From assembly GCA_038496445.1 (NCBI GenBank), contig JALMLS010000138.1, positions 124,001-188,000 of the forward strand: 64,000 nt of DNA, given 5' to 3'. The first letter of the stretch is position 1. Each line of letters begins with the position of its first letter. Positions 7,746 through 11,004 of this stretch are shown in pieces. This DNA comes from Trichosphaerium sp. ATCC 40318. Its lineage: Eukaryota > Protista > Tubulinea. The translations under genes were made by a program, and so were the position numbers. The notes beneath the pieces are model-generated. The model had not been told where the DNA came from, searched no databases, and saw only the letters and a program-made list of their open reading frames with translations.

Positions 7746-10700
7746 ATGTATAATCAAGTATTTGTACTTGTAGCCGTTGGGCTCTTTGCTACAATAGCGC
7801 AAGGAGCTTCAAACTCTAATACAAACACTGTGTTCTCTTGTAATGCGACTTCTACCAATTGGGGTTGTGAACCATCCGATTGGACACTAAAAACAGTAAC
7901 GAGGAATGGAGTCAAGGTAAAAGTACCGAATAGACTGAAATGCGAGACGACTCCAAAGCCTTACATGAGTTGGGCTTCTAAAACAAAGAGAACAGATAAT
8001 TACCGCGTATTCGTTGGCTCTGAGGAGTCACCAGAGACAACGTATGTACCTGGAAGCGTTTTAGACGTAACAGTTCTTGTTACGGATTATACAGCAAAGT
8101 ACCGTGGAATCATGCTATACGCCGAAAACTCAGACTTAGAACACGTAGGAGAGTGGAAACTAGCGAAAGACTTCCCAGGTAACGTACTTTTCTTTTCGGC
8201 TTTTTTAACCTGTTTTGGGTTCCTACTGGCTTACAAGTTTGTTTAAGCTCTCTTCTTGCTTCCTTGGGGTAATAGCACTAGTTGCAAACAGACTTTGATG
8301 CATAAGAACGCTGTACTGAAGCCTTTGAAGTCTACATTCAAACTTGTTGCTCCATCTAAAGGCACAGGGGATATTACTTTCCGTTGTCTTATTAAGAGCG
8401 GTGATGCAAACACTGGCGACTTTTTCTGGCCTAACATAGAAGGAGACTTTACTCTCAAAGAATCAACAGCCAATCTAGATATTGGAGGTTGGTATGCAGC
8501 ATCAGTACGTACTATCGAAGTTGATTGATTTGTTACCGTTTTTTTTTTTTTTGGATCAAAATCCGCCTTTCTTGGAGGCATCTGAGGATTTTATCCAGTA
8601 GTGTTGTGACTCATTATTTTGTCTAGAAAGGACAATCGTGTACTGATAGATGCGCCGAAGAGAGCCTTTTATGTGACGTTGTATCAATGGAACGTGTTAA
8701 CAGTGTTAACCGTATTGACGAACAACTCGGACAATTTCTTTGTAAGAGACCATTTCTAAGCAGTTGTGCTAGTACAGGCCCTTTACAAAATGATGATGGA
8801 TTTTGCTACTATGACGACACACGTTGTGAAGACAGTGGGCGCTCAGACACTCGTATTGACTGTGACGCAACTTCAGCAACTTCGTACGAGACTTTAACTT
8901 GTTTTAGTCCTGTTCTAATACTTTGTAGTGTCCGTTTCTGCAATTGTCTATCTACTACAAATGCTCCAGTAGTACCAGAAGACACTATCAACCCAACTGA
9001 AGCTCCAACTGGAGCCTTTGAAAACCCATTGCTTCGAGCTTCTCCAGCATCTACAAAATCTGTTGCATCTCTCCTGTGGATATGTCTAGCCATCTTTGGT
9101 ATTTCGTCAACTTCAAACAAACGTAATACAACATCTGTGCTACTGGCCCTATTCCTCATTGCGTTGGTATCCTTCCCAACAGGCATCAGAGGTCACAACT
9201 GGATGTTCAGTCTTTCAAGACGTAAATATGCCAGCACTGAAACACCTTGCCCTCCTAAGAACCAAAACACACCTCACGCTCAAGTCGGACCAGATCAAAC
9301 ATTCCAACTTGAATGGGCCGTGGGTCATAACCGCGTTTCTTACTTTGTTGTCGTTCACGAAAAGCATGAAGATAAACTAAAGCTTCATGATAAAGAAATG
9401 TTCGCCAAGTACTTTGACGAAGCACCTCCAGGAACAGTCCAAACTCTGCCTGTATATCATCGTCAGTTCAACACGCGTGATTTTGAAGATAACGCAGCTA
9501 TGGAGGCAATGTACACAGGTGAGATAGCGTCAACAGATAGTGGCTACATACCTCGCCCTGAAGCTTTCGGAAGCTGGGGAGACAATGCTCGTCTGTTGAA
9601 GTACAAGGATGGAACACATGAGGCTAACTATGCTGAGTATGAAAATGCTGACTTGCCGTGGATTGAGTCTGTATTCAAAGCAGAGCATGTCGCTCATAGA
9701 CCTGCAGATGCCGATATGATTAAACTTAAGATTCCAGGTCGCGCTGGATACGGTCGTTATATTGTTCATTGGTTATGGTCTGGATACAGAGACTGTACAG
9801 ATATCGATTACGTACCTGATCAAGTGGAAGAGATATATGGTGTACAGGAAGAAACACCTACATTCACGTACGTGATATGAGTAGATAGTATTTTTAAAAA
9901 CACTCAAGATCAATCTTGCTTTTTTCTACTTTTTTATTTATTAAACCTTGACAAGTTTGTTTCTTTGGCTTGTTACTATTCTGGCCAGCAACATCATCGT
10001 TTCTCTCTTATTTTATAACTTAACCAGACTAGCCTTAACTGTTTTCTTTAGTCGTGTTGACCATTGCTACTTCCCTGAAGGCAAAATTCTTGGTCGTTGT
10101 TCACGTGTTTATGATGACTTGACATACTGCTCCCGCAGTTGTCAACCTAGTTCTCGTAGTTGCTCTGGAATTGCAGTAATGCCTCTAGCAGTTGCTTCGC
10201 GTTACTATGAACAAGCTAGTCTTGTTGATGATTCTTGCTATGAATTCTTTAACTTTACAGCACTCAACGAGTCTGCAAAAGACGTCCAAGTCTGTTTCGC
10301 TGTTAATGGTCGTGCGCCTTCTGATACGTTCGGAGAGACAGAAATTGTGTTCCAAGGAGATCCAGCTTACCATGCTACCTGCTACATGAAAGGAAGCGGA
10401 CGTACATTCCCAGGTATGAATCTAACAGCTAGAAAACAATAGTAGCAATCAATGTTTGCTAACTCTTTGATCAGGATACGTACCACCTACAGAGCATGTT
10501 GTTGATTGGAGACATGGTGATCAGTGTATCGATTGCGATACAGCAAACTTGAATAAGCTTCTTACACGTATACCTACATGGCCTTTATCCGATGATTGTC
10601 GTCATTGTGACGATGATCCCATCGCAAATTACACAGTGCATGAACCTCCTACGCTTGAACTTGTTCAAAACGGAACAACATGTGACGGAGTCCGTTGGTA

Positions 10701-11004
10701 TTCAAGCAGTAAAAGTCATAGCTGTAACGGTACAAATAAGGAGGTAGCACCTTTGTGCTACAAGCCTATTGCCATGAACGGAAGAAGAGAAGAGTATGAT
10801 TTGTTCCCATCAGAGTGTGCTTTGTTGGCATCACAAGATGAAGACTGCACGTCTTTTATTGCTACCTTCAGAGGATCATATACTTCTGGAAGTAAGAGAT
10901 CTATCAAGTGCTTCTGTAAGACTAAAAATGAGTGTTGTGGTGAATGTACTCCTAAGGATAGAGGCGAGAATTATAACATTTATGATATTGTTATGTCAAA
11001 TTAG
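7746..11004 (+). CDS. Secreted multidomain protein: signal peptide, reeler-like domain, Cys-rich region, two hydrophobic segments, LPMO-like His-brace domain, Cys-rich/PAN-like C-terminus
   Basis: Exons 7746-8178, 8248-8504, 8627-8883, 8929-9867, 10052-10413, 10475-11004 join in frame. Reeler-like YVPG..V.V...YRGIMLYA...VGEW...APSKGTGDITFR. From 9194: HNWM..SR..C..EWAVGH..L.IP..GRYIVHW.WSGYRDCTDI. Confidence 0.75.

Follow-up and report, generated by a model that had tools for sequence, protein, structure and literature searches.

A predicted internal signal peptide precedes the putative first histidine of a lytic polysaccharide monooxygenase-like domain in a conserved protist precursor protein

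Gene structure

The subject of this study is a five-exon gene of 940 codons in the amoeba Trichosphaerium sp. ATCC 40318, located at 7746-11004 (+) of a 64,000-nucleotide window (contig JALMLS010000138.1, here C40, positions 124001-188000) from an AT-rich genome. Read from its start, the predicted precursor consists of a signal peptide, a divergent Reeler domain, a Cys-rich spacer, a Pro/Thr stalk, two hydrophobic segments around a basic loop, a domain that opens with histidine (the His domain) and a Cys-rich C-terminal module. The His domain resembles lytic polysaccharide monooxygenases (LPMOs) in its modeled fold, and the hydrophobic segment directly in front of it looks like a signal peptide placed in the middle of the chain. 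We consider it likely, with a probability of about 0.7, that a single precursor is cut internally by signal peptidase and that the predicted cut exposes His1 of an LPMO-like copper domain.

The gene model was built by reading the three reading frames together with the splice signals. The gene begins with an ATG at 7746 and ends with a TAG at 11002-11004, limits that a first-pass annotation, made from the letters of the window, had already given correctly. Frame arithmetic over the five exons yields a coding length of 2823 nt, or 940 codons. All four introns are of the GT-AG type with pyrimidine-rich acceptors (Table 1), and their GC content of 0.30-0.36 is clearly separated from the 0.41-0.45 of the exons. 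The strings on which the first-pass annotation had built its proposal are all in exon 3 at the places given for them: HNWMFSLSR at 9194, the His of EWAVGH at 9326-9328, and the Tyr of HWLWSGYRDCTDIDY (GYRDC) at 9785-9787. An internal signal peptide is expected to have a positive n-region, an h-region of 7-16 residues and a short c-region with small, uncharged residues at -1 and -3, behind a stop-transfer segment. The statistics over 92 homologue clusters and 43 paralogs agree with this pattern, and the window gene has NKR followed by VLLALFLIALVSF and then by PTGIRG, with a stop-transfer-like segment upstream.

Table 1. Exons, introns and protein features of the gene, in window coordinates.
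Feature	Coordinates	Strand	Description
Exon 1	7746-8178	+	ATG, N-terminal signal peptide MYNQVFVLVAVGLFATIAQG, first half of the divergent Reeler domain; donor GTAACG at 8179
Intron 1	8179-8247	+	69 nt, GT..AG, GC 0.36; the sole GT-AG pair that preserves both exon frames
Exon 2	8248-8504	+	Second half of the Reeler domain (C..TLMH ... GTGDITFRCLIK.GDANTGDFFWP)
Intron 2	8505-8626	+	122 nt, GTACGT..AG
Exon 3	8627-9867	+	1241 nt, single open frame: stalk, both hydrophobic segments, His domain
Exon 3, first part	8627-9037	+	Cys-rich spacer (GQSC..C..C, ..RFCNC) and Pro/Thr stalk; kept in paralogs and in homologue P0001
ASPAS patch and hydrophobic segment 1	9038-9109	+	Small-residue patch ASPAS (9038-9052), spacer, hydrophobic segment 1 SVASLLWICLAIFGISS (9059-9109)
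Basic loop	9110-9133	+	TSNKRNTT, predicted cytosolic
Hydrophobic segment 2	9134-9193	+	Putative internal signal peptide SVLLALFLIALVSFPTGIRG; h-region VLLALFLIALVSF, c-region PTGIRG; predicted cut after Gly 9191-9193
LPMO-like domain	9194-9867	+	225 aa; His1 9194-9196, His45 9326-9328, Tyr198 9785-9787
Intron 3	9868-10051	+	184 nt, GTACGT..AG, GC 0.30; not present in L001, a transcript-like homologue with a protein that continues unbroken across the junction
Exon 4	10052-10413	+	Start of the Cys-rich C-terminal module (RVDHCYF...)
Intron 4	10414-10474	+	61 nt, GTATGA..AG; most paralogs lack it and have one continuous exon instead
Exon 5	10475-11004	+	Remainder of the C-terminal module and stop; PAN/apple-like end at ~10642-11001, placed via alignment to paralog L003

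Conservation of the hairpin and the histidine

Sequence searches were run exon by exon, each exon serving as its own query. In the Trichosphaerium genome (70 Mb in 642 contigs) the His domain gave 54 matches, which correspond to about 45-50 copies, each accompanied on the same strand by an exon-1-like Reeler module ~1.5 kb upstream and by the C-terminal module ~0.5-1 kb downstream; exon 1 was found in 51 co-located copies. All 43 paralogs with a readable upstream frame have the hairpin of two hydrophobic segments and then the His. The order of elements is the same throughout these 43 paralogs: R-x-C-K/R-C, stalk, Ser/Ala-rich patch, segment 1, loop, segment 2, a small residue and HNW.

The family extends well beyond this genome. 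A HMMER search of 1.84 billion representatives with a two-sequence profile returned 549 clusters with an expectation value (E) <= 0.001, 89 of them at E <= 1e-30. Among the best 150 of the 549 clusters, the His domain is internal in 92, starting anywhere from residue 56 to residue 921, and exactly two hydrophobic segments lie within the 70 residues before the His in 79 of these 92 internal-type clusters. The dimensions of the hairpin are stable, with a core of 13-15 aa in segment 1, a gap of 7-8 aa, a core of 14-16 aa in segment 2 and a c-region of 4-5 aa. The loop carries a net charge of +1 to +3 in 43/43 paralogs and of +1 or +2 in 60 of 81 homologue clusters, and small residues make up 57-71% of the 14 aa preceding segment 1, as compared with a background of 46%. 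Because the layout recurs in the 43 paralogs and in 79/92 internal-type clusters with such constant dimensions, it is not a product of chance; hairpin and His stand together far more often than chance would allow.

The putative cleavage site itself was judged by the (-3,-1) rule and hydrophobicity alone, with statistics taken from the best 150 of the 549 clusters, in 133 of which the start of the domain is present. Position -1 is occupied by Ala in 100 of the 133, by Gly and Ser in 15 each, by Pro in two and by Thr in one, so that 130 have Ala, Gly or Ser. Only six residues occur at position -3, namely Ala (53), Val (38), Thr (14), Ser (13), Cys (9) and Gly (6), and the site is followed by HNW in 127 clusters.

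Two relatives place the same histidine in an entirely ordinary position. P0031 starts with MSKYLLVFLNLLALVGA followed at once by HNW, and has an in-frame TGA directly before its ATG, while P0016 starts with MLSLCIILFSFVNA, again followed by HNW, and has an in-frame stop in an AT-rich 5' untranslated region (UTR). Since both proteins put the His behind an ordinary N-terminal signal peptide, signal-peptide logic makes it the predicted residue 1 of mature P0031 and P0016, and hence the expected mature N-terminus where the domain comes first in the chain. This finding, together with the family-wide adherence to the (-3,-1) rule, bears out the proposal of the first-pass annotation that a signal peptide lies internally before the His.

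The 36 N-terminal-type cases are to be read as an upper bound, with P0016 and P0031 as the verified ones, because a further candidate, P0060, proved to be a gene-calling artefact. Its frame is open upstream through a signal peptide, a whole Reeler module and segment 1 (contig L053:1-1051), and it was rejected as an N-terminal-type protein. The public gene call of P0060 begins at the Met that heads hydrophobic segment 2; automatic gene callers can thus split precursors into false 'N-terminal' LPMO-like proteins. In a FastTree tree of the His domain the internal and N-terminal states require 15 changes, against 24-28 when shuffled, a result to which we give no weight, with the P0060 artefact among the tips. 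Another upstream region also calls for care: in the Logan contig of P0013 an apparent Illumina adapter (…GTGTGCTCTTCCGATCT; L052:1-23) lies 17 nt before the ATG, and the upstream in-frame 'stop' of P0013 is no proof of a 5' UTR because it is partly adapter.

Several of the paralogs L006, L040, L041, L044, L050, L036/C241 and L049/C74 have in-frame stops or a split His domain, and part of the ~50-copy family is therefore probably pseudogenised. Of all the paralogs, C241 is nearest to the window gene, with 66-70% identity. L044 was considered as an intron-less copy and rejected, its long frame crossing intron-like sequence.

Support for one precursor from one mRNA

The first-pass annotation had described the locus as one open reading frame and one gene, and this description is supported. 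In 43 paralogs the frame is open across the junction with no stop between the two halves, and in several homologues both halves are carried on single transcripts; it is from these homologues, and not from the window gene, that the single-transcript evidence comes. They are Cavostelium apophysatum P0022 (Trinity, 'type:complete'), Flabellula baltica P0007, Rhizamoeba saxonica P0008, Euplotes focardii P0021 (MMETSP0206, 'type:complete') and the MMETSP0437 sequence P0162, and the transcript-like contigs L001 and L051 carry both halves as well. P0001, the nearest relative outside the genome (30% identity over 88% of exon 3, E 1.6e-39), lies on a 2170-nt contig on which the frame is uninterrupted at the positions of window introns 3 and 4 and the hairpin is kept. 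The 2988-nt contig of P0003 holds a frame of 980 codons that is complete and flanked by short UTRs. Taken together, the homologue transcripts and the paralog frames support a single mRNA for both halves of the predicted precursor. Furthermore, the window gene has no in-frame Met from segment 1 to the His, so the downstream protein could not be translated alone from an AUG.

The His domain

The AlphaFold2 model of the His domain, made from a 44-row alignment, is a beta-sandwich with a mean predicted local distance difference test (pLDDT) score of 92.2 and a predicted template modeling score of 0.90. When it was compared by VIA-align with 48,161 representative chains, 16 of the best 50 rows were LPMOs or LPMO-like proteins, with Z from 4.6 to 7.3. 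LaX325 (6ibh) led at Z 7.3 (root-mean-square deviation 3.5, 126 residues aligned), and Thermobia AA15 (5msz, TdAA15) reached Z 7.0 (2.8, 118 residues aligned). Lower values were obtained for AA13 and AA9 (Z 5.8 each, with further AA9s among the best 50), for seven AA10 entries including fusolin (Z 4.8-5.6), for two AA11 entries (5.4-5.5) and for AA16 (5.1). Model residue 1 is the starting point of all 16 LPMO-like alignments; 12 of the matched chains are numbered from their mature N-terminus, and in these the alignment starts at the mature His1. At the level of the model, the resemblance to the LPMO fold is suggestive.

The residues that would bind copper are invariant or nearly so. His1 and His45 are each present in 122/122 members across the family, and position 198 is Tyr in 112 and Phe in six of the 118 sequences in which it is filled. 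An alternation of Tyr and Phe is known at the axial position of LPMOs, and the conservation of His1, His45 and Tyr198 fits a copper triad. C19 and C201 are likewise conserved and form a probable disulfide pair, as judged from the alignment.

Sequence comparison, on the other hand, does not place the domain in any LPMO family of Pfam. Pfam gave no match to the window His domain at E <= 1 and none to this domain in 26 homologues, and searches of PDB sequences, with a single sequence as well as with a profile, gave noise and no LPMO. Among the protein-language-model neighbors (score 0.89, 190-195 shared features) are clusters with LPMO_10 in 13-23% of their members, which we treat as a lead only. 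The first-pass annotation had asked for a comparison with the LPMO and X325 families and had suggested an unclassified LPMO family. With that comparison now run (X325, AA15, AA13, AA9, AA10, AA11 and AA16 matched at Z ~5-7.3), the suggestion agrees with the absence of a Pfam LPMO match, the fold matches from residue 1 and the invariant His/His/Tyr triad.

The accompanying modules

The N-terminal module, which the first-pass annotation had named a reeler domain, is supported as a divergent Reeler domain by transitive evidence from homologous sequences. Identity to P0021 is 44% for window exon 2 (against residues 115-187, E 2e-19) and 33% for exon 1 (against the part of that protein that bears the Reeler match, E 2e-9). 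The Pfam Reeler model PF02014 (cut-off 21) matches P0021 residues 60-149 at 37.3 bits, P0033 at 34.9 and P0045 at 26.6, and a precomputed match exists on P0178. In the Atlas, the corresponding part of P0003 has Reeler clusters as its neighbors. Run on the window exons alone, Pfam found no Reeler match at E <= 1.

Longer relatives carry DOMON-like stretches upstream, which score below the cut-off. P0036, known from an ENA contig, has a second copper module besides the His domain: its residues 366-441, which immediately precede the hairpin, form a plastocyanin/azurin-type copper domain (PF00127, 30.7 bits, cut-off 21.2). The part of the four homologues P0003, P0006, P0007 and P0045 (residues ~197-313) that corresponds to the Cys-rich spacer (window 8627-8950) repeatedly gives sub-threshold matches (E 3e-5 to 0.036) to the last 85 positions of Glyco_transf_18, the GnT-V C-terminal region. 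The spacer may be a shared small disulfide-rich domain.

The C-terminal module was modeled on paralog L003, where it is a single exon (~48% identical over exon 5), and the model has a pLDDT of 91.6. In VIA-align the last ~118 residues of L003 match the HGF N domain (Z 7.1), leech antiplatelet protein (LAPP; 6.2), plasminogen PAN (6.1), MANEC (6.0), the Sarcocystis lectin SML-2 (5.7) and the TgMIC4 apple domain (5.5), with the WSC/PAN modules of fungal copper radical oxidases at Z 3.1-4.5. There were 43 chains at Z >= 2, and the top 26 are nearly all PAN, apple or WSC domains. On the strength of this model, the C-terminal end is assigned as a PAN/apple-like domain. Pfam gave no match for this end in the window exons, Foldseek against the PDB found nothing significant for the model of the C-terminal module, and residues 1-175 of the L003 model, confidently predicted, gave no informative fold match. 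A hydrophobic C-terminal segment occurs in 4 of the 92 internal-type homologues; the window protein has none, and its downstream product should for this reason be soluble.

Discussion

The architecture described here is real, conserved and unusual, and of the explanations that we considered for it, internal cleavage is the best supported. To our knowledge, the field treats the LPMO catalytic domain as necessarily first in the chain because LPMO-type proteins need a free first His, and genome mining relies on this rule. An internal signal peptide placed exactly before the His would be a natural way around it.

We propose the following model for the maturation of the precursor. The N-terminal signal peptide would open translocation, bringing the Reeler domain, the Cys-rich spacer and the stalk into the lumen of the endoplasmic reticulum. 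Hydrophobic segment 1 would then act as a stop-transfer sequence and the short positive loop would remain cytosolic, and segment 2 would re-insert and serve as an internal signal peptide, oriented with the N-terminus inside and the C-terminus lumenal. In this model signal peptidase cuts on the lumenal side after the small -1 residue, Gly 9191-9193, which would free His 9194 as the N-terminus of a soluble product made up of the LPMO-like domain and the Cys-rich, PAN/apple-like module. The new N-terminal His could form a copper histidine brace together with His45 and Tyr198. The leftover hairpin, or else a glycosylphosphatidylinositol (GPI) anchor added at the small-residue patch, would keep the Reeler product on the membrane.

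Several observations weigh against this model. The strength of the fold match is middling: the best Z is 7.3, values of Z < 8 are common background, and generic Ig-like sandwiches score alongside the LPMOs. Foldseek against the PDB gave nothing significant for the model of the His domain (E >= 0.007), and the Pfam LPMO models, run against 44 aligned members at E <= 10, produced one stray AA9 match at E 0.065. In addition, the homologues P0066, P0068 and P0057 have one hydrophobic segment only before the His, and do not fit the hairpin topology.

The two halves might not belong to one protein at all, if two adjacent in-frame genes had been joined in annotation, if an 84-nt intron were spliced out at 9099-9182, or if the His protein had an internal promoter or start of its own. 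We regard such an artefact as very improbable. The first-pass annotation had pointed to an intron at ~9050-9130 as a feature that would separate two genes, and our examination of the region found one candidate, the in-frame GT..AG pair at 9099-9182, which covers the loop and most of segment 2 and whose length is a multiple of three. It was rejected: its GC content of 0.43 is that of an exon and not that of the real introns, its donor GTATTT departs from consensus, and it encodes a hydrophobic segment that is conserved in every paralog and retained in transcript-derived homologues. Separate initiation is conceivable in the 28 of 42 paralogs and 37 of 92 homologues that have a Met 13-32 residues before the His, and P0060 was split by a gene caller at such a Met; the window gene, however, has no such Met, the 43 paralogs have no stop between the halves, and the N-terminal module, His domain and C-terminal module are always found together, some 45-50 times over. 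An uncleaved two-pass membrane protein, in which both segments are stable transmembrane helices, the Reeler and His domains face outward on one chain, the His never becomes N-terminal and the domain serves as a binding module, also appears improbable, if less so. Two hydrophobic segments with a positive loop between them are also the appearance of a helical hairpin, and the similarity to the LPMO fold is moderate. A plain transmembrane helix, however, requires neither the (-3,-1) pattern seen in 133 clusters nor a c-region held constant at 4-5 residues, and cores of 13-16 aa are short for transmembrane helices. Nor would an uncleaved protein lead us to expect that the same His is the predicted first mature residue in the verified N-terminal-type homologues, or that His1 is invariant in 122/122 members.

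A further question is what the domain would do once released. It could be cleaved as we propose and still not be a polysaccharide-cleaving LPMO, if it bound or handled copper without catalysis in the manner of X325/Bim1, or if it were a redox protein that acts on some other substrate, an outcome we judge rather unlikely. The best structural match is to LaX325, a copper-binding LPMO-like protein that has no LPMO activity, no CAZy-type Pfam LPMO family matches, and the partner modules seen in relatives (Reeler, DOMON-like and, in P0036, plastocyanin-type) point to metal or electron handling. X325 has Asp at the axial position. Position 198 of the present family is Tyr or Phe, as in catalytic LPMOs, the product includes a PAN/apple-type domain, relatives of which fold bind carbohydrates, and the ~45 paralogs recall the multiplicity of LPMO genes in fungi; these three points speak for an enzyme and none of them is decisive. 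Polysaccharide-oxidising activity of the released domain is a possibility that we place a little below an even chance.

Returning to the internal-cut model, there are two readings of the manner in which the Reeler product would be held. Retention by the leftover two-segment hairpin has about even odds, and GPI anchoring is put forward tentatively, as somewhat the less probable of the two. A GPI signal has small residues at the omega site, a spacer of 5-10 residues and a hydrophobic stretch of about 10-20 residues. Segment 1 has the look of such a signal, with a conserved ASPAS-type patch, a spacer of 5-6 residues and a core of 13-15 residues; it is positioned mid-chain and not at the C-terminus. 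There is a precedent for this in an engineered protein: Caras 1991 (PMC2288913) describes a DAF-hGH chimera in which a mid-chain GPI signal still anchored the upstream part, and in which anchoring persisted when the hydrophobic domain was swapped for a signal peptide. Segment 1 would resemble that working signal with protein after it, in a natural and conserved setting. A search for a stand-alone Reeler protein with an anchor found two truncated copies of the fused layout only, and is uninformative on the origin of segment 1.

Comparison with LPMOs of the AA15 and AA10 families (and also AA9, AA11, AA13 and AA16) shows both what is shared and what is new. Judged from sequence and model, the common features are a predicted secreted beta-sandwich of suggestive fold similarity, a first His that signal peptidase exposes in LPMOs and would expose here, a second His and a late Tyr/Phe, as well as the appending of C-terminal binding modules. 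The H-x-x-x-x-S-x-S-R-like start of the present family recalls the HGxxxxPxSR start of AA10 and AA15. Unlike known LPMOs, in which the catalytic domain comes first, most members of this family have it mid-precursor behind a putative internal signal peptide; they also differ in matching no Pfam LPMO profile and in the nearly invariant HNW at positions 1-3 (127/133). X325 (LaX325 and Cryptococcus Bim1) provides the best structural match of the family (6ibh), and has in common with it an N-terminal His of histidine-brace type, here predicted, and a link to GPI-type anchoring, here putative. In X325, however, the copper domain bears its own C-terminal GPI signal, whereas here the putative anchor signal lies on the upstream Reeler product, the His-domain product has no hydrophobic tail, and Tyr/Phe 198 is kept.

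The closest parallel to the proposed processing is viral. The glycoprotein polyproteins of viruses (flavivirus prM/E, pestivirus, alphavirus and bunyavirus Gn/Gc) are processed by signal peptidase (reviewed in PMC7926653 and PMC8041242), and have the same succession of a stop-transfer segment, a short charged cytosolic turn and an internal signal peptide cut by the host enzyme. In contrast, the gene described here belongs to a cellular nuclear family with introns, and its cut would create a metal-binding N-terminal His and not merely separate two proteins. As regards the Reeler proteins (FRRS1/SDR2 ferric-chelate reductase, F-spondin and insect Noduler-type proteins), the N-terminal module is shared by transitive evidence, and the DOMON-like segments of some relatives are as in FRRS1, but there is no cytochrome b561 module here. 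A full-text literature search, in which few subscription journals were covered, found no description of an LPMO with an internal signal peptide or a Reeler domain, or of such a protist or amoeba family.

Since Reeler, DOMON-like and cupredoxin modules are found again and again beside the His domain, the tethered product may work together with the copper domain, for example by donating electrons or by handling metal. A more ambitious version of this idea, which we think unlikely, is a built-in two-component redox system, in which a membrane-tethered electron-handling partner and a secreted histidine-brace enzyme would be made 1:1 at the same membrane site, with signal peptidase and GPI transamidase both processing the ~55-residue hairpin. 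The partner would be Reeler in the window gene, and Reeler with a DOMON-like segment or a plastocyanin-type copper domain in relatives. If this were true, it would be the first case of a cellular polyprotein in which a catalytic metal ligand arises from an internal cut by signal peptidase, in a new LPMO-like family across amoebae, ciliates and other protists.

Confirmation of the cut would have several consequences. It would establish an unclassified and widespread protist LPMO-like family, of 549 clusters at E <= 0.001 and with no Pfam model, some of whose members are missed by N-terminal-only domain searches, and it would provide a rare cellular counterpart of the viral polyproteins processed by signal peptidase. 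It would also open to test the hypothesis of a functional link between the copper domain and the Reeler/DOMON/cupredoxin partner made with it. The presence of ~45-50 copies in one amoeba suggests that the family is important for feeding, for remodelling of the cyst wall or for surface chemistry.

Further loci in the genome

In one copy outside the window, at C14:157422-159083 (-), only ~1.2 kb separates the Reeler exon from the C-terminal module, and the stretch between the two shows no match to the His domain. This copy may have lost the hairpin and His domain through a natural deletion, or it may be a pseudogene. The same genome has three loci with weak matches to LPMO_10 (PF03067) that are unrelated to the His-domain family, C163:23656-23922 (-), C7:776223-776501 (+) and C168:73241-73555 (-). 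The best of them scores 22.2 bits (27.5 with neighbors) against a cut-off of 23, and the three may be canonical AA10/AA15-type genes.

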